Origin: Penicillus capitatus
Taxonomy: Eukaryota > Plantae > Chlorophyta
DNA length: 64,000 nucleotides
Assembly (NCBI GenBank): GCA_965649825.1
Contig: OZ287706.1
Span: 558,001 to 622,000, forward strand
Direction: 5' to 3'
This document shows, in pieces, positions 1-52,125 of this stretch (positions within the stretch are counted from its first letter, which is position 1; every line of letters starts with the position of its first letter). The position numbers and the translations under genes were made by a program. The notes beneath the pieces are model-generated. The model made no database searches, had not been told where the DNA came from, and worked only from the letters and a program-made list of their open reading frames with translations.

Positions 1-9
1 GCTGTTCAA

Positions 10-7106: not shown

Positions 7107-7365
7107 GGACAAAAGTTTTTGTCCGGGCGGTGACTCCATCGTCGGCCCCCGAACTGGCTCGACGTTGTCCTTTCCCCGCCGTAACCCATCCAACTCGGCG
7201 CGGGCTCGCCAGACACATCCGGGTCAACTCTGATGGGACTACCCTCCTCTGTGTCCGGCGCAGGAATCGAACCCCCGCGGTCGTACTTCTCGAACTGGCC
7301 AACTGCACCATCCGCATACGGGTCGATCCCCACGGTCGAAAAGTTGCCGACCCCATCGTATGCCC
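7107..7365 (-). ncRNA. Candidate Pol III structured RNA, copy A (unidentified family or tRNA-derived element)
   Basis: A box TGGTGCAGTTGG (7310-7299) and B box GGTTCGATTCC (7273-7263). The core differs from copy B at only 2 positions over 259 nt. It ends in the GGACAAAAACTTTTGTCC palindrome containing a T4 run. Confidence 0.55.
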
Positions 7366-8941
7366 GCCCGTGACGACTTCGCTGACGACTCTTGTCGACG
7401 ATTTTGGTTGCACCTGTTTGCGAAGCTGTCACCTAAGCAGGCTGTTGCTGAGAGTTTCGTCCTACTGCACTGCGTCCACAGGCACTTCCACGTTGACCTG
7501 AATGGATAAACTCTACTAGCTCTTCGTTGCACGGTCAATTTGACTGAAATTTGAACGATATCCTTGCCCATCGGTTGACGGAGCTTGTTGATTGAGCCTG
7601 TTATCCGCTTCTGATAGTCAAGAACAGCCTTCTAATAAAAGCTTCAATCACCCGTAAACTCTTCAACCCACTCTGGCATGCACCTCGACAGCTCGTGGCC
7701 TTCCTGTCAGACGTCGCACAAAGGTGGAAGTAACGAGGAAGACGCTGGGGATAACGACTGGTTGCTTTTATTAAACATTGAATCTGTCCTAAACCACTCT
7801 TCCGATGTTCGACTTAAAAGGGATGTAATCCACGCCAGTTGTATACATCCAGCGTATGGAGATAGTAGACGAATGGAGAAAAGCAACTGCGGCGAGAAGT
7901 AACAAACGGTAAGTACCGCGGATGCGAGGGCTATTGCGTTTTCTCGTCTCTTGTGGTCTCCCCCGAGTTAATAAACTTTTCAAATCGCGTGTCTCTCGTA
8001 AACGACGATATGATTCCACTCGGCGTCGTCGCGTTGTCTATGTACAAAGAGACGCCTCTGTTCCGACGCCGAAGCAAGAAAGAAATCTGTTGATACGAAA
8101 CTCGACCAGCCGTACGTTTGCGCACACCTCGCAAACGCAACGTTCGCTGCCGGAACCGCAGCGCCGACGGCATGTGCCAGGTCGTCATGCGCTCAGAATC
8201 ACGAGAACACAACCGCGCCTCGCAGACGGACACGTTGAGACCAGAACATCCGAATTCCTCATATGCATGCACCACCGCACCCCGTTTTTCCTCGAGCGTG
8301 CGCAGCGAGACGGCGAACTTTGCAAGCTGGCAGGCAACCCTTTTACGGCACGGTATTCTGCGAGATAGCTTGTCTGAGGCTGCGGCAGAATGCCGTTGTG
8401 CTTCTAAGACGCGTCGACGATAAAAAATCAACTCCAGAGGCGAACCCGCGGCGCAGACGGCAATGAAGAAACAGACAGATGCTGACGTTGTTTCCGTGTC
8501 GGGTGGCAACCTTCGCGCCACTGCTCAACAAAGAAGCCGGACAAGTCACCGCGACGAATCGCGTTGCGTCGGTATTCGCCCTTTCTTCTCGCCTGCTGAC
8601 GCACTGGACGATTTCCGCTGCGGAGCGTCTCTACTTTTAGCGAAAAGACGTCCGTTCTGAGCGCGGATTGACACAGATGGGGTCTTCTGCTACGAAGACA
8701 CCGTCACTGTTGACACAGACAGATTCCTCTAAGAGGACGCCTGGCTGCCAAAATCGGCAAACGCGAGTTCGGAACAGCGTGGCGGGCAGTACTCGGGCGC
8801 ATATAAAAGCGCATGCCGACCCAGTCTGGACAGTGAACGTATTTACCTGAGTTCGATATTTCTAGTTCTTGTCTGCCCAGTCTGTTCGTCGTTTTTGTGT
8901 GGTCAGAGAAGCGTCCGTCAGAACAGCGATTCCAAGTCAAA

Positions 8942-13153: not shown

Positions 13154-16100
13154 TCATGTCGCAATCAAAAAACAGACCAGTTTGTTCATTGGATTCTCGA
13201 TGACGCCCAGTTCCATGCAGCTGGATTCCAAGGCAGGAACGAGATACAGAGTGATGTTGAACCCTTGGAGGTGCACAACGCCAGCGGCTTTACGGCCCTT
13301 GAGATGTCTCAGTAGTTTGTGGAAGAGGCGATTGGGCACAGTGGGAGTGATCTGGAAGAAGTGATGCTCGATTTTCTTGATCGCTGGGTTTTCGGCCATT
13401 CTGGAAACATATGTCATAGGAACTCTTGCCTCGATCGTGAGCTGAGGAGGTAATGAAATGGGACACTCTGCAGTGGCACCAGTGATTTCGCATTCGCGGA
13501 AGAAGATCTTGCCGGTCCATGCACCGTCCGGAGGCTGCTGGGGGATGCTTGGCTGCGTCACCTGGGCAGGATTGTCGACGGGCTGCTGATCCTTGACGTC
13601 TCGAGCGTTTCTGTAGGCATCCAGGAGAAGAGATTGCTGACGAATGAAGTCATCTGGATCCGCCTGTCCGTCTTCTTGGAACATGGAGAAGGCGACGAGA
13701 TTGCACATCAGATCATCGTCATTGCCGACACCACTCGATGGATGGCCTGTCCAGTACGAGGGGAGAGGCTCGATGATTTCGATTTCAGGTGTCTCGCCAG
13801 AACCCGATGGAGCCATCGGGTCTGTTGGTGCGCTTCTTCCAGAGGGGCGAGACGACGAAGACGACTCGGGTACGAACGTTGTCCTCAGATTCGGATGGTT
13901 GTGTCCACGGGCAGGACTCCGTTGCGCTGCTTCGACTGGCAGTGCATTGGAAGACTCGTGCGCATGAACACAACCACGACTTGCTGAGAAGCCTCCGTGT
14001 GCGGGACTGCGTCGATCTGCATCGAGCGGCAGATCATTCGCAGACTCATGCACAGGTCTCTTTCCAAGCATGTTCAGATAGTCTTCGTACGTCATTGCTG
14101 CTTCCTCTTTGACAGTAGATGCTTGCTCGCAGGCAGGCGACACGTGTGCAGATCCATCGATAGGGCTTTGATGGATCTCTTCGTGCACAGGCGTTTGGCA
14201 TTCCGCTTCGGCGGGCATGGCTTCGGACGGTTCCGTGACAGGATCATCCACTGGGTTCGATGGACTGCAGTGCACTGGAGTGACGCATTCGAGTTCCGTC
14301 GGTATGGCTTCAGATGATTCTGGGACAGCGGGTACAGGATCACGGTGAAGAGTTGGATACCTTCTGGTGGGCTCCGGAGTGAGACACTCGGCTTCGTCTG
14401 GTGCAGCTTCTGGCGATACATGTGCAGGATTCTCGACGGGGCTTAACTGGTAGAGTTGACGCAGTCGAGTGACGTAATCAATTTGGGCTGGAACGGCTTC
14501 AGACGACTCAGGTGCAAGTGCATCGTCACGGAAACGACATGAAAATCCTATGGTGGGCTCTGGTGTGACACATTCGGCTTCATGTGGTGCCTCATCTGGC
14601 GATTCAAGCGCGGGATCACGGAGAAGGCCTGAGTGTCTTCTGGTAGGCTCTGGTGTGACACATTCGGCGTCGTCTAATGCCTCATCTGGTGATTCGGGTT
14701 CAGAATCACGGAGAAGGCCTGAGTGTCTTCTGGTTGGCTCCGGCGTGACACATTCGGCGTCGTCTAATGCCTCATCTGGTGATCCGGGCTCAGTATCACG
14801 GAGAAGGCCTGAGTGTCTCCTGGTAGGCTCTGGTGTGACACATTCGGCGTCGTCTAATGCCTCATCTGGTGATCCGGGTTCAGAATCACGGAGAAGGCCA
14901 GAGTGTCTTCTGGTTGGCTCCGGCGTGACGCACTCGGCTTCATGTGGTGCATCATCTGGTGATCCAGGCACCGAATCACGGAGAAGGCCTGAGTGTCTCC
15001 GGGTAGGCTCTGGTGTGACACACCCGGCTTCTTCTGGCGCGTCATCTGGTGACCCGTGTAAAAGATCGTCAGTGAGGATAGGACAGGCTCTCTCGTATTC
15101 GTGCAAATGAACATATCTCACACACGAGGAGGCTTGATGTAAAGGACGATGTTGCATGCTTTTCTCGGTCGGCAATGAATCTGATATGGATAATTTGCGT
15201 GAAAGCTCTTCGACGAGGAAGGATGATTGGTCGTTGTCAGGTAGAGGTTGTTGCTGTTCTGCGTCGGTTGGCTTACTTGTCGAAGACTCAGCATCGAAGT
15301 CTTCTTCTTTAGGGCTTGGACAGACATCTTCGCAGTGCACAGGTTGCTGCAGCTCCACATCAGTGGGAAGAACTGTCGAAGACTCGGCGTGACAGTCTTC
15401 GCTAGGGCTTGGAACGGCATCTTCATCTTCAGCTTGCTTCTTCTCCTCTTCAGTTGGCAGGACTGTCGAAGGCTCATCAGGAACACCTTCTCTATGGCTT
15501 GGACAGTAAACATCTTCTTCTACAGACGCTGGCTTCTCCGCACCCTTTGACAGGGCTTCAAAGGACTCGTGCATGGGCTGCTCGATTGGACTTGATTTGT
15601 TGTTGTCATCTTCAGCTTGCTGCTCCACTGCAGCTGATACGACTGTTGAAGACTTATTCGGAACGTCTTCTTTATGGCTTGGAGATGCATCTTCTTCGTG
15701 CACAGGTTGTTTGTCTTCTGCTTGGGTCGATAAGACTGTCAAAGACTCGACCGCGACTTCTTCTCCGGGACTTGATGTTTGTGGAGTCGGATTAGGAATG
15801 TCTGCTGGCTTTGGTCGAGATTCTTTACTGTTGGACTCCTCTTCTACAGTGAACAAGAGATTTCCATTATAAGTACACTGCAGGTTCGTTGTACTTTGGG
15901 TAACTGCCTTCGTCTCTCTGTACTTAGGCGCCGAATGACTTGCAGGCGCCTCTGCTGTTCGGGATTTCTTCGGCTTTCTCTGGGCTTTCTTATCTGCAGT
16001 GTCTCTGGTAGTAGCCTCTGTCGGTGCATCAAACGTGTCCGGGTCGGATTCAGACGCCCTGGATACAGATGGACTCTTGCGCTTGGCTTCTGTGGCAAAT

Positions 16101-18396
16101 CCACGATCTGCCTTCTTTCTGTCTTTGGTGTTTACAGTCGATGTCTTGACCCTCCCTAAAAACACGGTGATTCGTATCCCCGATCTGAATAAACGATCGA
16201 TGAGCATGCATCGGCAGAACGATGCTCGATGCTTCGCGACTCAGGCACCTTCAGCGAGGGACTGTGTAGGCCGTTCGCGGCTAGGACCGATGTCGGCAGC
16301 AGGATCAGACCAGGACAGAGATCTCGGCGACACGCGGCGTTCCTGGCTCGCCTCTTCTTCGCGAGGTAGCAGATCGTTCCTCGATCTCTTTTTCACAGGA
16401 TAGCGACGATCGAGATTCCTAAGCGCGGGCTGCAGGACGCGCAAACACACCGTCATCTTCTCGATCGTCGGAGCTTCGATCAAGAATCCTGCGGATAGAT
16501 CACTCTTTGAAGAATGAGCGTCATCAGTGAGGTTGGGGCACCCTTTCGGATAGAGTCGTCGACTTTGATGATGTGCTGCGGAGCACGGCGGCCGTCGCTG
16601 TCAAAGCATCTGACCAGATCGTGGATCGTTGAGTGCGCATGCGATGCGTCCATCCACAGGAAGGCCGAGTAGTACTCATCCCTCATGCACCGTACGGATG
16701 GAACCAGCATGAATGCTGGGCGTTCCGTTTCGTATTCTGGATTCCCTTTCAGCCCTTGGTAACACTTCAGGGCCTCCCTAGAAATGACAAGTGAGATCGG
16801 ACTGATCGGAAAGCACTGTTCCAAACTTTGCAGAATCGAACACGACGAGAGCTCTGGCGAGCGAGACTCGGGGAAAGAGAACTCCGGAAACCCTTCCATA
16901 CTCGTTACATGCATCACTAATGTCACCGTTTCTCAGGTTTCCAGGCAGAGCCATGAACCAGATGACGGGTCCGTACTGGTCGGCCACCGAACAGGATGCG
17001 GATCCTGCATCCAACCCACTCATTATCCCCCGGGAGCCTTCCTGAACCTACCGCGCTCAAAATCCCTGCTCAACATGACCGGCGGATCATCGATGGGTGT
17101 GGCAGGGATCTGAGGGGCGTAGGGCACGGGCCCAGTCGGCGGAAGGGACTGTCGTCCGGGTTGGTCCTGCGGGAGACTGGGTCCAGACTCGACGCGATGG
17201 CGCAGCGACTTCTTCGGACGCCCTTCTCTCTCGTGTCCCAGCTCTTTTGCTTGCTTGTCCTCTATCAGTTTTCGTCGAGCTCTGGCCCATTTGGCGGCGT
17301 AGGCGTCCGCTGTCGTGCGCGATCGAAGTCCATCCGGTCCGGAGCGGGCGGCGAGGTGTGACTCTTCTGGACATCCTTCGTGCTCTCTCTTCCTCTCCGC
17401 TTCCTGTATGCGGATGAGGACGTTCCTGAGATTGTACACGTGTCTCATGTACGAAGAGTCCGGATGCTGTGTGTGCTGCCTTCCTGCACGGGTCACCCAA
17501 ACGATGCGTCAGCCACGTCGTGTCGCATCATCGTTGATCTCACTTTCGATGACGCTGTTGAGCATGTTGAGCGTCCATCTGAGGAGATCTTTGTCGGAGG
17601 CGTGAATCTCGTATGCCAGACTGTAGTTGTCTGGTGTCTCTGGCGGCAGCAGGATGCGATTGAAAAAGACATTGGCCGACTCGTGATAAGGCTTGGACAT
17701 GTCTGTCCAGATGCGGACGCACTCGGACAATATATCTCTTGCGTAGTGCTTCAGCCCTTTGGCCAGGGCATTCAGAATCATCCAGCACTCGGTGCGCTCG
17801 GGGGTCAGATCGATGGGGATACCGAGACTGGTGCGTGAGTGATCCATGTGCCTGCGAAGCTCGTACAGTTGCCTGCGGTCACACACATCACACCATGAAC
17901 TTTGCTGCTGTGTCGCTAACCGGAAGAGATGTGGTATGATCTTCATGAAGTGGGGCCTCATGTCCGGTGTCGTCCACTCGAACATGTCGTCGAGGACTGT
18001 CAGCGCGTCGTGACGCGTCTCTTCGCACAGACTGCGCTCTCGTTGAATCCGAAGTTCCGGTCGCCAGGAACTGATTTCGATCAGCGCAGAGACAGTCGTG
18101 CCGATGTTGGCCAGGTACTTCGGCGCCATCCTCCTCAGCATTCGCGCGGCCAGGCGTTTCTCCTGTGGCGTTTCCGACCGTGCGTGTTGCAGCACCGAGT
18201 GGTACCAATCTTCATCGTATGGCCCGTCGTCTGGCTGGGCCGCCTGGAACAACTTGAGGATTCGAAATAGGTCCCGAATGGGTTGCAGATTCGGCGCCGC
18301 CGTCGTCTCGACGGGGTTGTGCCGAGATCGACTGGTGACCCGACTGGATGACCCCTGCGGTGAACGTCTGCGTTTGCCGCGCATATCGTGATCCAT
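13154..18396 (-). CDS. ~1600-aa multidomain protein: API5-like helical N-terminus, RRM (+ RRM-like), acidic tandem-repeat region, C-terminal SPOC domain
   Basis: Six ORF segments join in frame through GT-AG introns of 60, 47, 49, 53 and ~78-93 nt. YHSVL...EKRLAARML...RHDAL matches the API5 N-terminus. VIWFMALPGNL...YGRV...RALVVFDSAKEALKCY is an RRM. WTGKIF...LPPQLTIEARV...LKGRKAAGVV...LYLVP is SPOC-like. Confidence 0.75.
14551..15060. repeat. Coding 90-bp tandem repeat (5 full units + 1 partial, degenerate copy at ~14365)
   Basis: Units start at 14551, 14641, 14731, 14821, 14911 and 15001. On the minus strand they encode ECVTPEPTRRHSGLLRDSEPGSPDEALDDA. Confidence 0.95.
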
Positions 18397-18601
18397 CGTA
18401 AAGGAGATTCGCAAATCCGAGTTCGCAGGAAAAACACAGTTCGCAAAAACAAACGAACGAACGAACGTACGTACGAACAGTCATTTAAATCGCAAAAAGG
18501 ATGGAATCGTCTCGATGATTACTCACCGACAAGATGTGACGTTCAGCATCGGTATCAAAACGCATTCAGCAGATCGCGCGTTTCGATCACAACGATCGAA
18601 A

Positions 18602-22646: not shown

Positions 22647-24155
22647 TCAACTGCCTTGCATCGTTCTTTGTGTTCTCCCGATCCACCACCTCAATCTGGC
22701 CACATTGGTAAACAGTCCAGCAAAGTCAGAGTGGCCGCAGACGTCCGAAGCGTCTTTCAGGTGCGCGATGGCAACGAGCTCATCTCCGTTGGCGCCTGTG
22801 CTGATCAGCGGGCCTCCCTCGTCTCCTCTGCAGTACTCTCGCTCTCTTGTGGTGCACAGGACGTTTGTCGGGAGGTTTCTTCCGTAGTCTGCCTCGCAGG
22901 CGCCTTCGCTTTCGACGTTCATGTTTCCCACCTGTACGACAGATGCAAAACCGCTGTTCCTCGATTGCCTTCCCAGACCGACGAATCTCAAAGCGTCGCC
23001 CGCTTTGACCACTCCGCGTCCCTGAATGGCGATGGGCGTCTTGCTCGACGGCTTGTTCAGCTTGATCACCGCTAGATCGTATCCATTTCCCAGATTTTGA
23101 GCGCTATCGCCCCTGAACCAGTAAGGATGGATCACAATCTGCGCTGCCTTCCGAATCTGACCAACAGTCGATGTCGTCCGTGGAGATGTTGAGAGAGAGT
23201 ACGCACTTCTGGCTGTTCTCGGCAGTTGCTGCCTGTGCTCTGGACATCGCGAGCATCGATCACGAGGATGGGCACAAAGTGTCCAGTGGATCCGTCCACG
23301 CAGTGCGCTGCCGTCAGCACCGTCTCCTCCGAGATGAGTACACCCCCACAGATGTGCCGGTAGCCCTCGACGAAGGAGGAACGGACGGAAACAAAGTAAG
23401 GATGGCGCTCGCAGGGGGCGTCCACGCCAGGTGCCACGCGCGTCGCGGGGAGAAACGCGTCTTGTATCGGAAAAGGGCCAAAGCTCGCGGTCTGTGGACT
23501 CCCTCCCCCGACGGCAACTGGCTCCTGAAACAGAGAACCCTTGCAAGTGTCCTTGCAATGTAGCCTCTCTTGTTCAACTTACTGCTTTGCAAGCCGACGA
23601 GAATGAGAAGGCGACGAGATCTTCGATCGCTTGCTTTCGGTGGTCACCGGGGCGACACTGTGGCTCGTCGGACAGCAGACAGAGATGATCCAGAATGGAA
23701 CCTCGGTCTCCACAGCTGAAGTCCTCGTTGACCAGCAGATCTTCGACCGTTTGGAAACTGCCGTGCGCTCCGGCGAACGCGGCAAGCGGGACGACGCGAG
23801 GGTTCGTGTCGCCGAAGGGGACGGCTCTGGAGATCGTCAACGACGCCCCGAGCTCGCGGAAGCGGGCAACGCTATCGACGTCGTCTCTCTCCGCTGCGAA
23901 GAACAGAGCTTCTTCCGCTGAACATGGAACGGTTGCCGCGCCGGGATACTCCAACGATCCCGCCGCAGCGGGACAGTCGACCGAGTTGTGCACGAAGCAC
24001 TCGGGCTGCGTCGACGCGCTCGAAGGCAACACGCACCCCGGTTGATTCGTCTGAACGCCGTTGCTGTGGCCATCTGTAGTACAGGCGCATCCTTGTTGTG
24101 CCGAGCAGGGATAGAGACAGAGGGCGAGGATGGCCAATCGGAAACTTGTGTACAT
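22647..24155 (-). CDS. Tandem paralog: secreted Cys-rich/ankyrin-like/trypsin-fold pseudoprotease (GDEGGP)
   Basis: Same three-exon layout (58- and 50-nt phase-0 introns). TAAHC, YDLAVIKL and YCRGDEGGPL are present. The start could be ATG 24155 or 24209. Confidence 0.85.
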
Positions 24156-27060: not shown

Positions 27061-27130
27061 ACCAAGACGCTGAACGTCGTCGACTCTGCTCTCGTGGCGT
27101 GCGTCATTGCATCGTTCCTGAGTCTGCCGC
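27061..27130 (+). repeat. 70-bp copy of a coding segment of the amino-acid permease gene (29878-29947)
   Basis: ACCAAGACGCTGAACGTCGTC...GAGTCTGC matches at 66 of 70 positions. Confidence 0.9.
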
Positions 27131-27959: not shown

Positions 27960-28825
27960 TACCTGTAAAAACAGAACAGAGTTTGCTGTCGATTGAGAAC
28001 TACTTTTCGCGATAGGCGACGGCGGCGGACGCGACGAATACGAAAGCAAATCTTTACAGCTCCGTATTCAGCGGCGAAAAGAATCAAAGGGCGAGAGGAC
28101 AAAAGTTTTTGTCCGGGTGGTGACTCCATCGTCGGCCCCCGAACTGGCTCGACGTTGTCCTTTCCCCGCCGTAACCCATCCAACTCGGCGCGGGCTCGCC
28201 AGACACATCCGGGTCAACTCTGATGGGACTACCCTCCTCTGTGTCCGGCGCAGGAATCGAACCCCCGCGGTCGTACTTCTCGAACTGGCCAACTGCACCA
28301 TCCGCATACGGGTCGATCCCCACGGTCGAGAAGTTGCCGACCCCATCGTATGCCCACAGGTGACGACTTCGTTGACGACTCTGGTGCCACTTCGCCTCCT
28401 CCCGTGCATCCGTGACGACTACGTTGACGACTTTAACACACAACGCTTGTATCATGTGACGACTCTTGTCAACTTCTGCAAGACCTGTCCGTTTCTGCGT
28501 TTCTCCTAATTCACCACATCGCCTTTCACCTCTCAAGGCGTACTCTCACAGACGAAGACTTCTACTTCGACGATAGGGAGGAGATTACGAGAGTGAACTT
28601 GGACTTCGTCGAGCTATTTTGGCAGCATCTTTGCGACTCTCTCGGATACCGATTTTCCTGTGTGCTGTAAGTGGTGAATGCGTCCGCGGGATACCGAAGA
28701 GGAAACCAGTGGACAAAAAGTCGCGTTAAATGTCTTTAAAAGCAAGTGCAAACATCCGTGTCAATTTCTCTCGGACTAAAGAGTGAAACAGTGAAGGCGC
28801 TTTCCAATAAGCTACAGTAGCAGGC
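27960..28825. repeat. Dispersed repeat copy B (homologous to 51258-52125, inverted)
   Basis: Shares the core with all copies and a further ~470 bp of diverged upstream sequence with copy D only. Confidence 0.9.
28097..28355 (-). ncRNA. Candidate Pol III structured RNA, copy B
   Basis: A box 28300-28289 and B box 28263-28253. 257/259 identical to copy A. Confidence 0.55.
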
Positions 28826-29206: not shown

Positions 29207-30636
29207 ATGATCCGCGCATCGAAGCCGCACGGTCGACTACTGGACAGCGCGTTTCGAACAGCGGGTTCGAAGCGTCGTGCGAATCTGCGACGCGACTCCA
29301 CTAGGCGACGGGTTCAGAAATCAGAGAACGACGTCGCCGTTTCGAAGGAGATCCAGTCGACGACCGGCCGAACGCAGCGTCTGTGGTCCAACCTCGACCC
29401 GGAGACGCTCAAACACGAGCCTGGAAACGTCTTCGGCGCCGCCGCCCTCGTGGCAGGCACAACGATCGGCGCCGGCATCCTTGCCCTCCCCGCCGTCACC
29501 CAGGTCTCCCGACAGCCTTCTGCCTTTCGAACGAGAGCAGTGCTTCTCAGGAGTCCGGCTTCGTCGCGTCGAGCGTCGCCATCTGCGGCGTCTGCGCTTT
29601 CTCGGTGGTCACGGGGCTCCTCATCGCCGAGGTCAACATAAACACGATGTGCGAGCTCGGCTCCGGAGGCGTCTCGCTGACGTCCATGGCTGAAAGGACT
29701 CTGGGTCCTCTGGGCACGCGGGTCTCGAGCGCGGCCTACGTCTTCCTTCACTACGCCCTCCTCGTCGCCTACATATCCCGAGGCGGTAGCATCCTGAGCG
29801 AGTGGCTCGACGTGCCTCCGTGGACAGGTGGCATCATCTTTGCCTTGCCGCTCGGCGGCCTGTGCTACGCGTCCAGCACCAAGACGCTGAACGTCGTCAA
29901 CTCTGCTCTCGTGGCGTGCGTCATCGGATCGTTCCTGAGTCTGCTGCTGGTCGGCAGCGGAGGCATCCAGCTCGACAACCTCGCCAAGGCAGACTGGTCG
30001 GCTGTTCCCGCAAGCCTCTCCATCCTGTCCCTGGCCTTCGTCTACCACAACATCGTCCCAGTAGTGGCGTCGGACCTGGAAGGCGACATCCAGAAGGTGC
30101 GCACGGCCGTCGTCTTGGGCACAGTAGTGCCGCTGATCATGTTTCTGTCGTGGGACGCCACGATACTCGGATCCGCCTCGTCTGGTAGCGCTGCAGATCC
30201 TCTGGGAGCCCTACAGTCGAGCAACCCGCTCTTCTCGCCGCTGGTGCAGAGCTTCTCTCTGTTTGCACTGGCCACCTCATACATCGGATTCGTTCTGGGC
30301 CTCGCGGACTTCATCTCCGACGCCGTGAAGTTGCCCTCCGGTCGACAGCCCGTTCCGTACCTTGTCGCATTGCTGCCGCCTCTGGGACTGGCGTTCACCT
30401 ACTCCGATGTGTTCTTTAAAGCCCTGGACTACGCCGGGACATACGGAGTGCTCGTCCTGTTCGGCGTGGTTCCAGCTCTGATGGCTTGGAGCGAGCGATA
30501 CGGCGGAACGACGGTCACGTCGACGCAGATCGTTCCAGGAGGTCGCCTGGCGCTCATCTTCATCGGAGGAACGGCGGCTGCCGTCATTGCCAATGAGTTT
30601 GCCGAGCTGATTAGCAGCATCGGGCACTCCAGCTGA
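29207..30636 (+). CDS. Aromatic amino acid (Trp/Tyr) permease, TyrP/Mtr family, probably plastid-targeted
   Basis: GNVFGAAALVAGTTIGAGILALP, LSLAFVYHNIVP and FALATSYIGF motifs are present. One intron, 29504-29550. The N-terminal extension is Arg/Ser-rich. Confidence 0.9.
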
Positions 30637-34450: not shown

Positions 34451-35360
34451 ACTTGTACATGCACAAACAGACGCTCTCGAAGTTCGCCGAATTCCCTTGT
34501 CGACCGGGAGCGACATCGCGTTCCGTCTCTCGTTCTCGACATTCTCCTTTCCGTATAAAAGCAGCGAAGCAGAAATCTCCGCTTCGGCGGGAGGTGAATT
34601 CGATAAGCGATTGAGCGTCGGAGACGGACAGACGAGACGAGACGAGTCAGAAAGAAGGATCTGTCAAAAGGGCAACCAATTAGCTCTTCTCCATTTGCTC
34701 CGGCGACAGAATTGGGAGTTGGACAGCGCAGGAATGGAGTCGTGGAAATGCTTCTTGCACCGAGGGTGAACCGAGAGGGTGATGTATCCTGTCTTCTCAC
34801 TCTTCTCGCTGAATGAAACATGGAACATCTGAGAGGCAGCCAAAATGACAAGCATAAGCAACCGCAGAGACAAGACCCGAGATCAACCTTAGTCACTCGC
34901 CCAGAAAAGATGTGTACATCCAGCAGATGCCATGCCCTATCGGCGGCGACTTTGATATCTTCTCCTGCAACATCTCACTCAGTCTCGATCTACAGCTGAC
35001 ACGCTGAAAGCATCGATCTGTTATCAATGCCTGGGCAGCTTACAGGCGAATCTCTCCACAAGTAGAAATACCACGTCTAAACTGAGAAGAAGAGTGTTTT
35101 CGATAGATTTAACATATCTATGTTGGAATACATAGCAAACAGCTGAACTTGTGGTAGCCGTTGCTTCTGGCGGCGCTCTGCCCGAATGTTCCTCTCCTTC
35201 ACTTCACCGTCTTTTCAGAACCCATTCCGAAAGTCTGCGAACATCGTGACGGACTCGCTACATACCCTTCTCGCGAAGATGACGTAATGTTCTCGTGTCG
35301 AATGCGTAAAGATTGGCGGCACGTTTTAAAGACTGCTTTCGCCGTCCAGATACAGAGAAC

Positions 35361-36218
35361 ATGGCTCCGATTACGCTTTACACCGCAGGCACGCCCAACG
35401 GCCTGAAAGCATCCGTCACTCTCGAAGAACTCGGGATCGAATACGATATGTACAATATCAAAATGAGCGAGAACGAGCAGAAGCAAGACTGGTTTCTCAA
35501 AATCAACCCCAACGGCCGCATCCCTGCCATCGGTACGAGCCGACGCGCATCCACTTCTCTCCGAAGCAGGTTGCCACAGTGGACCACAGCAATGGAGACC
35601 TGGCTGTCTTCGAGAGCGGTGCCATCATGATATACTTGGCAGAACGCTATGGGGATGGATCTCTGTTGCCCAAGGAAGGGAACACGCGCTACGAAGTGAT
35701 CCAGTGGCTGATGTTTCAGATGGGAGGACTGGGTCCCATGATGGGACAGGCAAATCATTTCATACAGTATGCGCCTGAAACGGTGCCATACGGACAGAAG
35801 CGCTATTACAATGAGAGCAAACGTCTCCTGGGAGTCTTGGAAAGCCGTTTAAAAGATCACGAGTACTTGGCAGGGGACCAATTCACTCTAGCAGATATCG
35901 CCAATTTCTGCTGGGTGCTCTATGCCTATCACGCCGCCATCGATGTCGATGAGTTTCCCTCTGTCAAAGTGCGCCCTGTGGAGATCGTCGCGTTTTTGGT
36001 CATCTGTCCATGTGCAGGGATGGATGAAACGTATCTTTGCAAGAGAGGCGACGCAGAAAGGGACGAATGTTCCCGAGGGTGCTTTCAAGAAGGTAACGAC
36101 TGTTGTCTTTCTGTGTAGTATTCGAAGAAGACAATGTCATGAACAGGAAATGGTGGAAGATGACGCTGCCCGCAAAGCTAAAGCCGATGAGAATCGCGGC
36201 AAAATAGTTGGACAGTGA
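35361..36218 (+). CDS. Glutathione S-transferase, Ure2p/YfcG (Nu)-like
   Basis: [44 protein letters not shown] and FTLADIA motifs. Three short introns. Confidence 0.95.
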
Positions 36219-36965
36219 ACAACGCGGAAGGATTAGTTCTTTTGAGATATCGAATCTGTTTCGCAGAGATCTCTCTGACACATTTAAACGTTGTACATAC
36301 ATACATCTCTGTCCGCGATAGTGAACGGTTTTTTTCAGGAAGTGTTAACCAGACGGCTTCTCTCAAAAATTCTCGTTTTGGTTCGCGGATGTAGATAGAA
36401 AGTATGTGCAGGTTCGAAATCTTGTCGCAGGATGTCTTCGTCTACAAGAAGGAACTTCGCAGATTAAACAAGGAAAGAATGAACTGGCTAGCTGCGTCTT
36501 AATCCACCCTTGCTCTTGATAGAGTTTCTTCAGCATCCAGACAATCATATTCATAAACAGAGAGACGCCAAAATGGCGGAGTGCTGATTGTAAAGCACGA
36601 AAGATCCCAATGCGGAATAACAAAGTGCTTGGCAAAAAGGGTCTTATTAGAAGGCTTTCCGCACATCATCTACATGTTTCGTTTTGTGATATAGTCAGTC
36701 GTCAGGATTCGTCGTCGTTAAGTCGCCACGAATGCATACTGGGCGGGCGACGGCGTTGTTAAGAGTCGTGGCGTTAGTACTATCCTTAGGTGTCGGAGTC
36801 GATATTTGCAAACAGGTGCAAGCAAACAAAGTCGTCGACAAGAGTCGTCAACGTAGTCGTCATAGATGCACGGGAGGAGGCGAAGTGGCACCAGAGTCGT
36901 CAACAAAGTCGTCACGGACGACGCGGATACGGCGAATACGGTGGGCATATGTTGAAGTCGGCGCG

Positions 36966-37201
36966 TTCTCGACCGTGGGGATCGACCCGTATGCGGATGG
37001 TGCAGTTGGCCAGTTCGAGAAGTACGACCGCGGGGGTTCGATTCCTGCGCCGGACACAGAGGAGGGTAGTCCCATCAGAGTTGACCCGGATGTGTCTGGC
37101 GAGCCCGCGCCGAGTTGGATGGGTTACGGCGGGGAAAGGACAACGTCGAGCCAGTTCGGGGGCCGACGATGGAGTCACCACCCGGACAAAAACTTTTGTC
37201 C
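36966..37201 (+). ncRNA. Candidate Pol III structured RNA, copy C
   Basis: A box 36998-37009 and B box 37035-37045. Stems 37049-58/37091-100 and 37066-76/37118-27; terminal palindrome 37184-37201. Confidence 0.55.
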
Positions 37202-37486
37202 TCTCGCCCTTCGATTCTTTTCGCCGCCGAAAACAGAGCTGTAAGGATTTGCTTTCGTGTCCGTCGCGTTCGCCGTCGTCGCGTAGCGTGAACCGTGGTT
37301 CTCTATCGACAGCAAGCTCTGCTCTGTGTTTACAGGTGTGCTAGCATACACACATGTCATTCAGCGCTCCAGAATCTCTACATCAGTGCTTTAAGTCCTC
37401 GTCGTTGCTTCTTCCCGAGTTGCAGAGTGTAAATCTCGAAGGGGGTTTCCTGTTTCGTTGCAAAATGAATCCTCTTCTTTCAGACG

Positions 37487-38220
37487 GTGTTGGCTGATCA
37501 TTCGTTTGCAGTCCTGGGACAGTACATAACTTGCTCACACGTCTGTGTGGACAGAACGCGAACTCAGAGCCTCCGCCTGCTGCAAGGTATGGTGGGTAAT
37601 GCAGAAAACTCTTTGCTGCCAGGCGAGTTGATTTGGCTGACGACAAACACTATGACTGCTTCGATCCCGTTCAGTATAAGTTGGCTTGTGGAAGTTGACG
37701 CTCGATGGGCGCGTGAGTAGCCGAAAATGCCACAAAGACGACTGCTTAAAACATAGGCATTCAACAATTCGCTCTTCTGTGAGACGTGGCCTGCGACAGA
37801 AACCGCATTCGAACTCCGCCGGAAGCATTAAGTGTGGTCCGAGGAAGAAAACTCTCTCTACATGTTCTAATCCGGCTGCCCTTCTAGTTGGATCTTCCTC
37901 CCTCCGAAGAGCATGAATTGCATTTTCTTTTGACATGTTAGTTGAGGCGGACAAGTTTGTAGCACCTCACTGGTAATTGGTCTCTCATCGACAAGTTCTC
38001 TTTGCGACAGGCGCGTCCTGATGCGATAGGTTACTCAACTGCTGGAGAATGTGTCTTTACGGAAGAGGTTATTCGATACTTCGAAAGGCAATGGATCGGT
38101 CAGCCATCCCTGCTATCGGTCCTCGCCTTCGACACTGACTGCTCCGTCCTCAGATGTCGAAACGGGAGTGCGAGGTTTCCATCAGCATCCCTCCAGTCGC
38201 AAAAAATGCTCGACTGAGCA
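37487..38220 (+). pseudogene. Possible decayed Mutator/MULE-like transposase remnant (copy C)
   Basis: Collinear degenerate motifs LADHSF, MF*SG...IFLPPKSMNCIFF*H and IRYFERQWIG...RCRNGSARF, with stops and one frameshift. Confidence 0.3.
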
Positions 38221-45043: not shown

Positions 45044-45261
45044 TGTCATTGGGACGAACGCGCTTCGCGTCGGCCATGGGTGCTGCGTAGCAAATATTTT
45101 TAAAAAACCAAAACGTTTCTTACACACAACTCATCATGAGTCTCTATTTAATGCTTTCGATCGCAGCATCCCATCAGTTCTGTCTGTCGCATCGGACCGT
45201 CATCTTCCCGATCCCTCGTCACCAATGTGACATCATGGTTCCGTACCATGAGGAGTTCACA
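45044..45261 (-). repeat. 3' LTR
   Basis: Identical to 49723-49940. On the minus strand it contains a TATA-like CATTAAATAG and a TGTAA poly(A)-type signal. Confidence 0.97.
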
Positions 45262-45464
45262 CGCTTCTCTGCGCGATCAAAACTCCGAAGGGATCTCCGT
45301 TCCACTCTGAGCTCCTTAGCTCGTTGCAGTGGTCAACAGCTTGAAGATTCGATAGGCGTATCACATTAGCCAGCCCTCAAGGGCCCGGGATCTCTACCCA
45401 GTGATGTACCAACGGAAGACAGTCTGAGCGCTTCACTCTTTGATGACCCTCTCCCGATAGAGTG

Positions 45465-48260
45465 TCATACATAAGGCCTCAAATTGTCCACATGGCAAAT
45501 GATCTTCTGACTTGACCCAATACGTCTCAATCGGCAAATATGCGGTGAACACTGTTCGACGATCACAAAGGGCCCAACCCAGAAGGGACTCAGTTTGTCG
45601 TCGAGCCTTTCCATCCTCACGGCATCGAAGACCCATACTTCCTCTCCGATGGATGGCTGAAACGGTTCCATTCGTCCAGAAACCCCGAGTTCTTTGTCTC
45701 GAGCTTCTTTGGTCCTCCAAGCGGCAATCTGTCTGTCTCTCGTCACCTCTTCAAGTGTAGCCTGCCGACCTCCGATAGTGATGCCCGACCATAGGTACCA
45801 AGGAGCGAATCCGGTAATGCTGTGCGGCGCCTGGTTTGTGCAGTCGACTGCCAATGGCAGCACGTCGATCCACGTCTTTCCAGGGTGATCGAGCAACATT
45901 CTGCGCAAACGATTGACCAACGTCTGATTCCATCGTTCGTTAAGTCCGTTCGAATGATGGGCATGCGGAGCAGTCAGTATACTCTGAGCGCCCCATTCCT
46001 CTGTCCACGCGCTGAAGGTCGGCGAGCTAAAATAGCTTGCTCGATCTGACAGAATTCGCTTAGGGGCTCCATTCTCTCGAAACCACCATTCCAGCCCTTT
46101 CTGAGCTGAAGCCGTCGTGGATCGCTTGAACGCCATAGCCGCTCCCAGCCTTGTCAAATGATCGACCATTGTAAAGACATAACGTACCCCCGTACGGGCA
46201 GCCCGTAGGGGGCCAACGAAGTCAATAGAAATGAGTTCTCCAGCACGGAGGGGTTCGGGCAGCCGTCCCAACGGCACGGTCCTGACCTTTGGTTGAAATT
46301 GTTGACACACACGACACTGACGACAATAGGCTTTGACTTCCTCCCGTGTAACTGCTAATCCTAGTTCTTTGGCAATCTCCCAGGTCTTTTCCGCTCCGAA
46401 GTGCCCCGCGTGAGCTCCGGCCAAATCCGATGGCCTCTCTCTCATTGTGGAGGCCGTTATACCACTTGACGAATCCGGAAATAGCTCGCTCTGCCTCGAG
46501 AGAAGATCTGGCAGCACATTGGAGTGCCCCGGCAAGAAACGCAACCGTGGGCAACACTCCTGGATTTGGTCCAGCCGTCGTCGGATGAAGGGACTTCGAT
46601 TGTCTGCATTTGCGAGGCTGGCCACCGAAGCGTTGTCACTGAACACCGTCACTCTTCCTCCAAAGATCCATGGTTGAAACTTGCGAAGGGCTTTGACCAC
46701 TGCCTCCATTTCCAAGTGATTCGAAATCTGATGCTTCAATGCTTGCGGCCACAAACCAGAAGCACAGCAAATTATTTGCTTTTGTTGCAATAGCACTGCA
46801 CCCCAGCCACTTCCCGACGAGTCCACTGCGATGCCAAAGTCCGCTGTTTCTTTTGCGTGTGTACATGCCACTGTGTGTTGTTCCAATCCACTCAGAAATG
46901 TCTGCCAATCCTCCACCCTTCCCGATTCTTCCGCCTTCCGTAGCGCACCTTGAACCACTCTGCCGTTCACCACGAATCGAACAAGTTGCTGGAACCAGCC
47001 CTTGATCGCTCTCCATTCTGTTTGCGTTCTGGGAGGCTGTAGCTTCTGAAGGCGTGCTATCGCTGAGGCACTTGCACGCCAACCTGTTGGAGTCACAACG
47101 TGTCCCAAGAAGTCAAATACCTCTTGCATGAAGGAGCACTTATCCGGTCGCATTCGCCATCCCCGTTTTTCCAGAATCTGGAGTACTTGGCGTAGATCTC
47201 GGAGATGTTCTGGTACTGATTGCGAGAGCAAAAGAATATCATCCATGTAAACCACCACTTGGCTCTGCACTGCTTCATCCATTTCTGCAATCGCAGGTCT
47301 CAATGCTCTTAGGAATTCACTAGGTGAATTGACGTATCCGAAGGGGAGTCGTTCGTAGACGTAGAATTTCCGTCGCAAACACACTCCAAAGCAATGATGC
47401 AGCTTGGGAGCCAGCTCTACTTGGAAATACGCGTTTTGCAAATCGATTGCTGACCCGACCACATACGGGCGCACCCCAGCGATCGTATGCTCTCTATTCA
47501 CTGCCAGGAAGGGCTGCGCTTCTACGCACGAGTTCAGCTTTCGAAAATCGAGCACCAATCGCACATCTCCAGTTTTTTTCGGAATACAGAACGCCGGGAT
47601 CAAATATGGCTCTTGGGACGTCTCCCTGACCACCCCCAACTCTACTAACTTGTTGATTTCTTCTAGAACTAACGACTCTTCGCTGGGTGATATGGAGGGC
47701 GATGATTGTTGTCTTGTCAGGCGATGCTGAAATGGGATATCTGTCACCACATGATCGACACATTTCCCAAGATTGCCACTGGTTAAGTCGTGGAATTCTC
47801 GCAATATATTCTGCAAATCTTCTCCATACGCAACAATGCTTCTCAGCGGCAACGGAATTCCTCTTTCTGTCAACGGAATTTGCCCTCTGTCTGGAACCAG
47901 TACATGCGTCACATTGGTTTGGATGATGCACAGTGGCATCCTAGGCGTCAAATGTTGTGGCATCCGACCTCGATTCTCTAGCATTCCCCATACCCTACAT
48001 CCATTGCTCTGTGGAGAAAACCTGACTCCTGGGCAAGTCAGCGCGTCCGTGATGGACCCTAAACTTCCCTTGACAAACTTAACGGGAAGGATAAGCTTTC
48101 GGCATTCCCCTGGACCCAGCACCCACGATCTGTTGAAAGGGAGTACCAGATAGCAGTTTCTCAGAAATGGAAGGTATAGAGGGGTCTCCAGCAACTCAAA
48201 GCTTAACACCACTGGGCTGGATTCAGTGATGCTCCTTGGATGTTTTTTTGCCCTTTTAGC
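45465..48260 (-). CDS. pol: pol ORF (dUTPase-like, RT, RNase H, integrase), entered by -1 frameshift
   Basis: RT VVYMDD. RNase H DSS..E..D..D. Integrase HHCC (AHAGH...CRQC) and DDE (IDF, SDR, NERWN), with a C-terminal GPF motif. Confidence 0.95.
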   Translation of the reverse strand, partial: AKRAKKHPRSITESSPVVLSFELLETPLYLPFLRNCYLVLPFNRSWVLGPGECRKLILPVKFVKGSLGSITDALTCPGVRFSPQSNGCRVWGMLENRGRMPQHLTPRMPLCIIQTNVTHVLVPDRGQIPLTERGIPLPLRSIVAYGEDLQNILREFHDLTSGNLGKCVDHVVTDIPFQHRLTRQQSSPSISPSEESLVLEEINKLVELGVVRETSQEPYLIPAFCIPKKTGDVRLVLDFRKLNSCVEAQPFLAVNREHTIAGVRPYVVGSAIDLQNAYFQVELAPKLHHCFGVCLRRKFYVYERLPFGYVNSPSEFLRALRPAIAEMDEAVQSQVVVYMDDILLLSQSVPEHLRDLRQVLQILEKRGWRMRPDKCSFMQEVFDFLGHVVTPTGWRASASAIARLQKLQPPRTQTEWRAIKGWFQQLVRFVVNGRVVQGALRKAEESGRVEDWQTFLSGLEQHTVACTHAKETADFGIAVDSSGSGWGAVLLQQKQIICCASGLWPQALKHQISNHLEMEAVVKALRKFQPWIFGGRVTVFSDNASVASLANADNRSPFIRRRLDQIQECCPRLRFLPGHSNVLPDLLSRQSELFPDSSSGITASTMRERPSDLAGAHAGHFGAEKTWEIAKELGLAVTREEVKAYCRQCRVCQQFQPKVRTVPLGRLPEPLRAGELISIDFVGPLRAARTGVRYVFTMVDHLTRLGAAMAFKRSTTASAQKGLEWWFRENGAPKRILSDRASYFSSPTFSAWTEEWGAQSILTAPHAHHSNGLNERWNQTLVNRLRRMLLDHPGKTWIDVLPLAVDCTNQAPHSITGFAPWYLWSGITIGGRQATLEEVTRDRQIAAWRTKEARDKELGVSGRMEPFQPSIGEEVWVFDAVRMERLDDKLSPFWVGPFVIVEQCSPHICRLRRIGSSQKIICHVDNLRPYV
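48187..48250 (-). promoter_or_regulatory. -1 programmed ribosomal frameshift signal (A_AAA_AAC + H-type pseudoknot)
   Basis: In-frame slippery heptamer at 48248-48242, 8-9 nt spacer, stem 1 GCATCACTG/CAGTGGTGT. Loop TCCAGC pairs with downstream GCTGGA. A -1 shift joins the two ORFs. Confidence 0.85.
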
Positions 48261-49756
48261 TCATCGAGCTCAGTTTGGAGTCTTTGCATTTCTTCGAGGA
48301 GATGGGTCACATCAGTTTGGTTAAGGACCTTTAGCTGTGCCTGCGTGCATGTTATTTCTTCACCATTTCTGCGCCAGATTCTCTTTTCTTGGCAATCAAT
48401 GAGAAGTTGATTTGTAGCGAAGAAAGGGAATCCCAGGATGAGCGGCGGGCCTTTGCCTCCAATCACAAACGCTTCCATCTCATATGGATGGTCATCTATA
48501 CGGGCTTCGATGTTTATGCGTCCCAGAATTGGAGAGGCACTTCCATTTCCCAGCGAAACGTATAGGTTTCCACACTGTGTTACTCTCTGCTGGATTCCCA
48601 ATGCTTTCACAGTAGCCTCTTGAATGAAACATGCAGTGGCGCCAGTATCCACCAAACCACTGATCTTGGTCCCTTCGATGCAGGTCGGCACGTTCATGCT
48701 AGCCTTTTCCACCGGGGAAATTCGAGAGCAGACCAGAGGGTAACCCTTGTACATGGTATACAGCCCTGGTTTCGAAAGAACATCCCCGTCTTCTTCGGTC
48801 AGTTCAAGCTCCAAAGGATCGTCAACATCTTCGGTTTCGGTTTGTAAAGCCCTGAGTTGGGTGGCCGGCCTCGCGTCAAAGGAGTTCGAGGCGAGATATT
48901 TCTGCGCTTCTCGTCGAAAACGGGGCACCCGCATCAAACGTTTCCATGCGATCATCACATGGTTCGGGTTATTGATGTCCAACCGTCGGTGTTGCCCGCT
49001 TGATGGCTGCGATGTTTCTCCACCCACAAGTGGAAGTTCCAATCTGGCGGTCTCCGGTTTGCCACTAGCCTTTTGTCGACAAGTAGCTTCATCGAGGTAT
49101 TCGACCAGTTGTCGATATGAGTATTCTCCAGCGTCCGTCATGGCCAGCACCTCGAGCTTGTTTCGCACCAGCGTCTCTATTTGTATCAAACTCAGTCCGG
49201 CTTTTCCGGTGTGGATCAATGCCCGACGTATCTCTTCAGGCATTTGATGATAAAGGATCCGGACGGCCTTCTCCATCGACACCTTTTGCTGGGCGACAAA
49301 GGACCGGGCTTCCCGAACGAAACGGTCCACGTAGACGAGTAAGTTTTCCTTCGCTACATCACGTTTCATGCTACGGAGCTGGTCCTCGGGCGCCACGAGG
49401 TCATCTTTCGGCAACAGCGCTGCCAAACGTTTATTCAATACTTGCCAACGAAGATCGTCTACTGCGGTTTCTTCGGACGCCGTTTCACCTCCAAGCTCTT
49501 CGCGACATGCCTTTTCGTCCAGGCGTCGGACGGCTTTTAGCTGAGGCAAAACAAGTTTCGAGGCTGCCGACTGGGGTTCGAGGCTGTCCAACAACGCTCG
49601 GTCTCGTTCACGTCCTACCGCCGTAGTGATTTCCAGCGATTCAAACAACCACTCGTGAATGTCTCGAGTATACTCCGAGTAAACAAGCCAGGTTCTCGTT
49701 CGAGAACCTCGCTCCGAAACCATGTCATTGGGACGAACGCGCTTCGCGTCGGCCAT
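48203..49756 (-). CDS. gag: gag-protease ORF
   Basis: 517-aa ORF with aspartic protease motif GLVDTGAT and ILGFPF. It starts inside the 5' LTR. Confidence 0.9.
   Translation of the reverse strand: MADAKRVRPNDMVSERGSRTRTWLVYSEYTRDIHEWLFESLEITTAVGRERDRALLDSLEPQSAASKLVLPQLKAVRRLDEKACREELGGETASEETAVDDLRWQVLNKRLAALLPKDDLVAPEDQLRSMKRDVAKENLLVYVDRFVREARSFVAQQKVSMEKAVRILYHQMPEEIRRALIHTGKAGLSLIQIETLVRNKLEVLAMTDAGEYSYRQLVEYLDEATCRQKASGKPETARLELPLVGGETSQPSSGQHRRLDINNPNHVMIAWKRLMRVPRFRREAQKYLASNSFDARPATQLRALQTETEDVDDPLELELTEEDGDVLSKPGLYTMYKGYPLVCSRISPVEKASMNVPTCIEGTKISGLVDTGATACFIQEATVKALGIQQRVTQCGNLYVSLGNGSASPILGRINIEARIDDHPYEMEAFVIGGKGPPLILGFPFFATNQLLIDCQEKRIWRRNGEEITCTQAQLKVLNQTDVTHLLEEMQRLQTELDELKGQKNIQGASLNPAQWC
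49704..49722 (-). promoter_or_regulatory. Primer-binding site, initiator-Met-like
   Basis: TGGTTTCGGAGCGAGGTTC directly abuts the 5' LTR and resembles the plant iMet PBS TGGTATCAGAGCCAGGTTTC, with mismatches. Confidence 0.7.
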
Positions 49757-49940
49757 GGGTGCTGCGTAGCAAATATTTTTAAAAAACCAAAACGTTTCTT
49801 ACACACAACTCATCATGAGTCTCTATTTAATGCTTTCGATCGCAGCATCCCATCAGTTCTGTCTGTCGCATCGGACCGTCATCTTCCCGATCCCTCGTCA
49901 CCAATGTGACATCATGGTTCCGTACCATGAGGAGTTCACA
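49723..49940 (-). repeat. 5' LTR
   Basis: Identical to 45044-45261. Confidence 0.97.
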
Positions 49941-51257: not shown

Positions 51258-52125
51258 TTGTAGCTTGGTTGAGAGCGCATGTTCTATTTGTTACATTGCC
51301 TAGCCCGAGAGCGCATGGCAACCGTGTTTACACGTACTTGTGGGGACATCTAACTCGACTTTCAAGTTTCTACTTGTTCCTCTTTGGTATCTCGGGGACG
51401 CATTCGCCACTTACAGCACACAGGAGAAATCAGTCTCGGCCAGACTCGCAAAGATGCGTCTAGAATAGCTCGACGAAGTCCAAGTCCACTCTCGTAATCT
51501 CCCCTCCATCGTCGAAGTAGAAGTCTTCGTCTGTGAGAGAACGCCTCGAGATGTGAAGGAGACGTTGTGAATTAGGAGAAACGCAGAAACGGACAGGGTC
51601 TTACAGAACTTGACAAGAGTCGTCACATGAGCACGGTAGTCAGGATTCGAAGTCGTCGACAAAGTCGTCACGGACGCACGAGAAGAGGCAAAGTGTCACC
51701 AGAGTCGTCGGCGAAGTCGTCACCGGTGGGCATACGATGGGGTCGGCAACTTCTCGACTGTGGGGATCGACCCGTATGCGGATGGTGCAGTTGGCCAGTT
51801 CGAGAAGTACGACCGCGGGGGTTCGATTCCTGCGCCGGACACAGAGGAGGGTAGTCCCATCAGAGTTGACCCAGAAGTGTCTGGCGAGCCCGCGCCGAGT
51901 TGGATGGGTTACGGCGGGGAAAGGACAACGTCGAGCCAGTTCGGGGGCCGACGATGGAGTCACCACCCGGACAAAAACTTTTGTCCTCTTGCCCTTTGAT
52001 TTTTTTGGCCGCTCAAAACAGAGATGCGAAGATTTGCTTTCGTATCCGTCCGAACATGCGCCATCGTTACGTATTGCGAAAAGCAGAATTTCCTAGACGA
52101 ACTAGACTCGGTTCTGCGTTTACAG
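51258..52125. repeat. Dispersed repeat copy D (homologous to 27960-28825, inverted)
   Basis: Reverse-complement comparison with copy B. Confidence 0.9.
51728..51986 (+). ncRNA. Candidate Pol III structured RNA, copy D
   Basis: A box 51783-51794, B box 51820-51830, palindrome 51969-51986. Three substitutions versus copy B in the core. Confidence 0.55.

Follow-up and report, generated by a model that had tools for sequence, protein, structure and literature searches.

[quoted passage not shown] The window, as the whole stretch of 64,000 nucleotides analysed here is called, had been predicted from its letters to encode a pseudoknot at positions 37049-37127, in an RNA that might be catalytic or serve as a protein scaffold. 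Both helices were found to lie within a conserved core of about 233 nt (window 36965-37197, + strand), and the 79 bases concerned are not an isolated feature. The prediction was examined across copies of that core.

The repeat family and its putative transcription signals

The sequence GGTTCGATTCC has four exact matches in the window, each marking one copy of a repeat. These matches and nhmmer searches placed the four copies as follows:

36939-37203, + strand: copy A, with its core at 36965-37197
51724-51988, + strand: copy B, with its core at 51750-51982
7105-7369, - strand: copy C, with its core at 7112-7343
28095-28359, - strand: copy D, with its core at 28102-28333

A further 13 copies, with 88-99% nucleotide identity, were located on other contigs of the ENA metagenome assembly ERZ25074695. 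They were found by searching the translations of gene-caller open reading frames (ORFs) that run through the repeat and then fetching the encoding contigs, a procedure that biases the copy set towards intact copies. In the approximately 340 kb examined, nhmmer identified exactly 17 copies, all full length (1-233/233), and no fragments or truncated copies. Pairwise identity of the core ranged from 89.5 to 99.6%, with a mean of 93% across the 17 copies, and homology between subfamilies started at +0 to +26, with conservation setting in at +22/26, and ended at +257 to +259, the latter coinciding with a run of T residues. Single-nucleotide indels between subfamilies were present at alignment columns 52, 72, 130, 148, 167, and 216, and the predicted proteins switch frame accordingly; a coding reading of the core was rejected because several such indels leave the reading frames unkept.

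A protein-space search with all six reading frames of the core returned copies only in ENA sample ERZ25074695, and a scan of JGI metagenome contigs and viral sequences with invariant 22- to 23-mers gave zero matches. The element is apparently species restricted. Because copies were found only in ERZ25074695, all covariation reported below is covariation within one metagenome sample and not across species. The 954-kb contig of this assembly that contains the window carries a 2830-aa VPS13-like ORF, trypsin-like genes, a glutathione S-transferase (GST) gene, and a Ty3/gypsy element. The Trp/Tyr permease encoded in the window is nearest to that of Caulerpa lentillifera (69% identity), followed by that of Bryopsis (58%). 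The GC content of the window is about 52%, the same value as that reported for Ostreobium (bioRxiv 10.1101/2020.07.21.211367). The contig is of eukaryotic origin, and on these grounds its host was treated as an uncultured green alga of bryopsidalean type.

The following features of copy A bear on its proposed transcription:

36830-36914, + strand: array of (A)AGTCGTC(R) motifs, five in number and putatively an external promoter element, with GTCGTC at -108, -95, -83, -43, and -31 relative to 36939
36939-36964, + strand: variable leader, with conserved GGG, TA, and TG patches and a pairwise identity of 54-100% (mean, 71%)
36965-37197, + strand: conserved core, a presumed small RNA of about 233 nt, recognized by full length in 17/17 copies, identity, and indels
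36998-37009, + strand: box A-like TGGTGCAGTTGG, with one mismatch to the tRNA-type consensus, invariant in 15/17 copies
37035-37045, + strand: box B GGTTCGATTCC, a perfect match to GGTTCGANTCC, for which all four matches in the window fall in the four copies
37194-37197, + strand: TTTT run, found in 14/17 copies, at which conservation stops on the 3' side; presumed to act as the Pol III terminator

The tRNA-type box A consensus is TRGCNNAGT(T)GG. The box A-like segment and box B start 37 nt apart, a tRNA-like spacing, and the conserved block begins approximately 33 nt upstream of box A, which is further than in a typical type-2 gene; the leader at 36939-36964 may or may not be part of the transcript. 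No tRNA cloverleaf was detected by ARAGORN in the window, and the Rfam tRNA model had no match on the element at E <= 10; the same tools detected a tRNA-Gln gene at locus L009. That gene has a T5 terminator and lacks an upstream AGTCGTC motif.

Two to five (A)AGTCGTC(R) motifs were present on the element strand within 130 nt upstream of 16 of the 17 copies, and the sequence between the motifs differed among subfamilies. AGTCGTCRNC had 14 matches in the window versus 1.8 expected (an eight-fold excess), and 10 of them lay just upstream of the four copies. From its distribution, the AGTCGTC array may be a new external promoter element. Sites of the motif were also recorded at window positions 51651-51724, 7369-7390, and 28359-28432 and before 12 copies at loci L002-L012, often as pairs 12 nt apart.

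The T-run was mutated to TCTT in the copies at L006 and L008, which carry 7 and 6 private substitutions, respectively, versus 0-1 in 12 copies. The copy at L007, the only one lacking the upstream motif, likewise belongs with the copies bearing 6-7 private substitutions, against 0-1 in the 12 others. Such a load in these three copies would be expected of a terminator and an upstream region that matter to the gene; few copies are involved, and the counts depend on which relatives were sampled.

The predicted helices and the predicted fold of the + strand

The arms of the two proposed helices and the domains predicted around them by RNAalifold are as follows:

36975-37048, + strand: long 5' hairpin domain, 36975-88/37034-48 enclosing 36993-37003/37022-31 and 37006-09/37015-18
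37049-37058, + strand: 5' arm of helix 1, GCCGGACACA, pairing with 37091-37100
37066-37076, + strand: 5' arm of the proposed helix 2, GTAG-T-CCCATC, with a variable outer GTAG and a conserved inner CCCATC
37091-37100, + strand: 3' arm of helix 1, TGTGTCTGGC, pairing with 37049-37058
37112-37195, + strand: 3' domain, with GAGUU (37112-16)/AACUU (37191-95) closing hairpins 37122-34/37141-52 and 37154-67/37175-87
37118-37127, + strand: 3' arm of the proposed helix 2, GATGGGTTAC, with an invariant GATGGG and with A37126 replaced by C in 5 copies

The original prediction had placed structure at the RNA level on the strand bearing boxes A and B, and this was supported by a fold signal confined to the + strand, by the substitution pattern in stems, and by a compensatory change in helix 1. 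The predicted folding energy was -112.8 kcal/mol for the + strand (z = -2.63) and -82.2 kcal/mol for the - strand (z = 0.03). Variant alleles occurred in 23 of 145 paired columns versus 33 of 94 unpaired columns (p = 0.002; alignment columns 27-265), and C/U transitions predominated over A/G transitions within stems (13:2, p = 0.007) but not within loops (5:12). A C/U change opposite a G keeps the pair by wobble on the + strand and would break it on the other strand. The RNAalifold consensus structure was derived from the same sequences on which it was then tested; the C/U bias persisted when the structure was taken from the minimum-free-energy fold of a single copy, and it reversed on the reverse complement. 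Both G-U pairs of the proposed helices likewise become A-C mismatches on the opposite strand, as had been stated. Covariation is thin, with one compensatory pair among 75 in a family that is 89-100% identical, and an all-against-all search for complementary covarying columns yielded only pairs explained by several private changes in one decaying copy.

Helix 1 is present as described: its 10 bp include one G-U (G37052-U37097), and C37048-G37101 adds an eleventh pair. Across the 17 copies, 98% of its alignment cells were paired, and its base-pair probability was 0.9-1.0 in every copy tested. The changes observed were an A-U to U-A compensatory replacement at L009, G-U to G-C in three copies, and C-G to U-G at L006, along with breaks at two terminal pairs, one of them in a single copy and the other in two. 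Of 300 dinucleotide shuffles of the 259-nt core, 17% contained a contiguous 10-bp helix having no more than one G-U. The estimated chance of a compensatory double change in this pre-specified 10-bp helix, given the private-change loads, is about 0.01; the pre-specification matters because an unrestricted scan of column pairs also yields such coincidences. As judged from the aligned copies, helix 1 is a genuine conserved hairpin stem.

The complementarity of helix 2 is also present as described (10 bp, a bulged T37070, and one G-U, G37069-U37124), and the arms of the two helices interleave (37049 < 37066 < 37100 < 37127), which is the H-type topology. Bulged helices of this size (10 bp, a 1-nt bulge, no more than one G-U) turned up in 74% of 300 dinucleotide shuffles of the 259-nt core, and a contiguous helix with another such helix crossing it turned up in 4.3%. 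Taken by itself, helix 2 is thus commonplace, and the crossing of the two helices is no more than slightly out of the ordinary. Two of the four outer pairs of helix 2 were broken without compensation, 37067-37126 in 6 of 13 copies and 37068-37125 in 9 of 13, and TAGT was changed to ACGT, TTGT, ATGT, or -TGT in 10 of the 17 copies with no compensating change. Among the copies compared, the 10-bp form of helix 2 is restricted to the window-type subfamily. The inner CCCATC/GATGGG was invariant except for two C-to-U changes, at L007 and L011, which fit wobble pairing in helix 2 and the nested GGG (37064-66)/CCC (37071-73) hairpin of the consensus fold equally well.

The energy of the pseudoknot was taken as the balance of constrained folds, together with unpaired probabilities. 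Forcing helix 2 open and adding its duplex energy gave a net -1 to -7.6 kcal/mol before a pseudoknot penalty and approximately zero after the usual penalty. CCCAUC, which sits in the large loop of helix 1, was mostly unpaired in nested ensembles (P = 0.43-0.84), and a competing local partner of GAUGGG, CCC at 37104-06, was predicted in several copies. With uncompensated breaks in the outer pairs, six uninformative inner pairs, and a marginal energy, a pseudoknot with a 10-bp second helix is not supported. Helix 2 is at best a 6-bp contact between the loop and a downstream segment (CCCAUC/GAUGGG), which the modelling allows sterically and energetically; a pseudoknot may form, but it lacks comparative support, and the copies contradict its long form. 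The comparison of homologues that the original prediction had proposed as its check accordingly divided the two helices, helix 1 being kept with compensation and two outer pairs of helix 2 being substituted without it. Of the uncompensated substitutions in both stems that were to count against the prediction, half, those in helix 2, were thus observed. One of the two helices inferred from one sequence stood up: the contiguous helix survived comparison and the bulged helix did not.

In the 5' domain, where the box B segment pairs with 36975-36988 in the consensus fold, there were four wobble-compatible one-sided changes and three breaks; in the 3' domain, one-sided wobble-compatible changes were seen at four pairs, with two breaks. 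Three smaller hairpins had also been proposed. Both arms of CGTCG/CGACG are present (37144-48 and 37164-68), but the consensus fold pairs CGUCG with CGGCG at 37128-32. Those of GGACAAA/TTTGTCC exist as well (37184-90 and 37195-201), but the 3' arm falls past the T-run, and 8 of the 17 copies have not kept it. GGTCG is absent from copy A (36880-37210) and occurs only in sister copies, inside the variable leader.

The suggestion that the RNA is catalytic found no support, as no ribozyme or other Rfam family matched the element. At gathering thresholds, an Rfam search of the window and 12 loci gave no match to the element, including the models for tRNA, SRP, RNase P/MRP, vault, Y, tmRNA, and ribozymes, and a search on the element at E <= 10 returned no family match, only noise (E 2-9). 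The stretches GUAGUCCCA and GGGGAAAG were considered for a likeness to SRP RNA and RNase P/MRP RNA; these candidates were dropped, there being no covariance-model match and the GUAG part not being conserved.

Spread of the family and competing readings

Flanks of the copies were homologous within subfamilies for 0.1-3 kb and are decaying, which provides an internal clock, and the downstream sequence was unrelated between subfamilies. A GST gene precedes copy A by approximately 0.8 kb and another precedes copy L010a by as much; identity between the two GST regions is 82%, versus 98% between the cores. Similarly, the L006 and L007 copies share 3 kb of downstream DNA that is 70-77% identical, with cores at 93%. 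In old duplicates, then, the flanks have decayed and the core has not. The GST gene upstream of copy A, which has a short intron, lies at window 35313-36118, and its paralogue at L010 8621-9500 is at an equal distance from L010a; the GST gene and the RNA element were duplicated as one unit. Copy A itself is a mosaic, its upstream region and leader being of the L010 type (L010 10127) and its downstream 1.26 kb (36939-38203 versus 6105-7369) matching copy C at 95%. This implies that copies have recombined or undergone gene conversion, the breakpoint lying within the core or close to it.

Hallmarks of retroposition were sought around the copies. The longest flanking direct repeats were 6-9 nt, versus a shuffled mean of about 7 and a shuffled maximum of 8-11, giving no sign of target-site duplications above chance. 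The copies end in AAAAACTTTT followed by subfamily-specific unique sequence, and a 3' tail of the A-rich, simple-repeat, or LINE-derived kind was not found. Close direct-repeat pairs resembling long terminal repeats (LTRs) were also absent, neighbouring copies being 7-21 kb apart and often inverted. The family spread by segmental duplication at the DNA level and not by retroposition, and purifying selection together with gene conversion would keep it uniform. The constancy of the core is due to selection, conversion, or both, and the near-identity of the window copies could reflect recent duplication or gene conversion instead of function.

Several observations concern the surroundings of the copies. 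The loci L005 (10247-10512) and L008 (10235-10499) are 98.7% identical over 6.3 kb, with RNA cores only 94.4% identical, and the mutated T-run tail (CTCTTCATTCT) is common to L008 and L006; these sequences suggest conversion from a decaying copy. ORFs for trypsin-like proteins, ankyrin-repeat proteins, and proteins of unknown function of 300-330 aa recur near copies (L003, L005, L007, L008, L010, and L011; window 3205-3912, 17509-18414, and 22647-23558), which suggests that the element copies sit in segmentally duplicated gene-family clusters. An 8-kb segment, window 1-8000 with copy C, is duplicated at 97.4% identity at L011, on the same contig and 15-35 kb upstream of the window. In addition, a separate 91-kb contig encodes proteins identical to those of the window and is probably an alternative haplotype.

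Taken together, the sequence signals tilt modestly towards reading the family as lineage-specific genes for small structured non-coding RNAs of the Pol III type. Each gene would be read by Pol III from a tRNA-type internal promoter, consisting of the box A-like segment at 36998-37009 and box B at 37035-45, probably aided by the upstream AGTCGTC array, and transcription would end at the TTTT at 37194-97, giving an RNA of approximately 200-235 nt with a UUU-3' end. The + strand RNA is predicted to fold into a 5' domain, in which a long hairpin pairing the box B segment with 36975-88 is followed by the helix 1 hairpin, and a 3' domain of two hairpins closed by GAGUU/AACUU. Its most likely role would be that of a stable, lineage-restricted ribonucleoprotein scaffold, comparable to 4.5SI, snaR, BC1 (a further lineage-restricted Pol III small RNA), and vault RNA in animals; a protein-scaffold function, as the original prediction put forward, may apply. 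If transcribed, the family would be the first lineage-specific Pol III small RNA gene family described in siphonous green algae, a little-studied group to which endoliths of coral skeletons belong. Its upstream motif is unusual, and selection has left clear traces on the RNA structure; if transcribed, it would offer a tractable entry to the study of non-coding RNAs and of Pol III promoters in these algae.

The chief competing reading is a mobile or repeat module, either SINE-like and derived from a tRNA or a piece of a larger transposon or composite, that was recently amplified, so that uniformity would reflect youth and conversion and the helices would be leftovers of a tRNA-derived head and body. 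It agrees with the presence of boxes A and B, the length of roughly 250 nt, the dispersal of many copies in either orientation, the mosaic flanks, and neighbourhoods rich in repeats, where trypsin, ankyrin, and unknown 324-aa ORFs recur. We nevertheless consider it rather unlikely, given the missing target-site duplications, A-rich or simple-repeat tails, and LTR-like direct-repeat pairs, the lack of truncated copies in approximately 340 kb, and a core far better kept than its co-duplicated flanks, a coding gene included; moreover, the upstream motif array lies outside any transcript driven by box A and yet is common to subfamilies. Much the same span of sequence might act as DNA, as a boundary or insulator bound by TFIIIC, a promoter or enhancer of neighbouring genes, or an exon or untranslated region of a Pol II transcript. 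A perfect box B is a TFIIIC site, the repeated upstream motif resembles a transcription factor site, and the element recurs beside the same gene families, but the roughly 233 conserved nucleotides far exceed a binding site, and the strand-specific fold signal and wobble-directed substitution bias are properties of RNA. Conservation, furthermore, stops at the T-run and not at a splice-donor consensus, with unrelated downstream sequence between subfamilies, and we regard a DNA-level role as improbable.

More improbable again is an RNA whose core is the H-type pseudoknot of helices 1 and 2, whether catalytic or otherwise dependent on that pseudoknot. The rarity of the crossing pair in shuffles (4.3%), the position of CCCAUC in a large and mostly unpaired loop, the favourable energy before the penalty (-1 to -7.6 kcal/mol), and the invariance of the inner 6 bp, in which the two C-to-U changes keep wobble pairing, are consistent with such a core. 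Against these stand the two outer pairs broken without compensation (in 6/13 and 9/13 copies), the balance of about zero after the usual penalty, the absence of a ribozyme family match, and the lack of any covariation separating helix 2 from the nested GGG/CCC and CCC/GGG alternatives. The more specific proposal that the conserved 6-bp contact is a true pseudoknot serving a ribonucleoprotein or catalytic function in an abundant Pol III RNA specific to the Bryopsidales, of a class with no Rfam relative, would be the least expected of all.

Known systems and other features of the window

H-type pseudoknots are known in telomerase RNA, tmRNA, and the P4 helix of RNase P/MRP RNA. As in those RNAs, a hairpin loop here can pair with a downstream segment, and GGGGAAAGGAC superficially recalls CR-I of RNase P/MRP. 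Unlike them, the element has no Rfam match and a second helix lacking covariation support, and it is multi-copy, whereas the genes for telomerase RNA, tmRNA, and RNase P/MRP RNA are single- or low-copy.

The closest parallels to the preferred reading, that of Pol III small RNA genes, are the rodent 4.5SI and 4.5SH and the primate snaR genes, which are lineage restricted and have type-2 promoters (PMC10137851, PMC7279448, PMC3045588). Shared features include internal boxes A and B with a contribution from the 5' flank, a T-run terminator, a narrow taxonomic range, multiple copies whose flanks were duplicated with them, an origin in tRNA or SINE-like sequence, and a structured RNA with paired ends. 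The element differs in its length (approximately 233 nt versus approximately 100-150 nt), in having no sequence relation to them, in its upstream element, a repeated AGTCGTC in place of a TATA-like box at -31/-24, and in its green algal host.

Like tRNA-derived SINEs (SINEBase, PMC3531059), the element combines a box A/B head with an unrelated body, a length of 250-300 nt, and many dispersed copies. Unlike them, it lacks target-site duplications and an A-rich, simple-repeat, or LINE-derived tail, and it has shared flanks, no truncated copies, and a core far better kept than the duplicated surroundings. The SINE reading was rejected, as target-site duplications, tails, flanks, and truncation were all against it. 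The TRIMp3 elements Helenus, Cassandra, and Ajax, which are non-autonomous LTR retrotransposons whose LTRs carry a small-RNA-like Pol III promoter (PMC10886601), resemble the element in having a tRNA-like Pol III promoter inside a repeated unit longer than the tRNA-like part. They differ from it in that the element has neither direct repeats flanking a primer-binding site and polypurine tract nor a 4- to 5-bp target-site duplication. With no close direct-repeat pairs and with copies 7-21 kb apart and often inverted, the LTR/TRIMp3 reading was likewise rejected.

Other repeats were noted in the window. A Ty3/gypsy LTR retrotransposon at 45044-49940 (- strand) has 218-bp LTRs that are 100% identical, with TG..CA ends, and is bordered at either end by a direct repeat, GCAT (or AGCAT). 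Its ORFs encode gag-protease (48203-49756) and reverse transcriptase-RNase H-integrase (45465-48212), and the element is apparently very young. The 1017-aa ORF at 13154-16207 (- strand), for which no Pfam match was found, contains a 90-nt (30-codon) tandem repeat at 14551-15056, with 5.6 copies and an 86% match, and degenerate repeats at 90-nt spacing continue from this array to approximately 15760. Finally, 70 nt (29878-29947) from within the Trp/Tyr permease gene (29383-30636) recur at 27061-27130, 2.8 kb upstream, with 94% identity.
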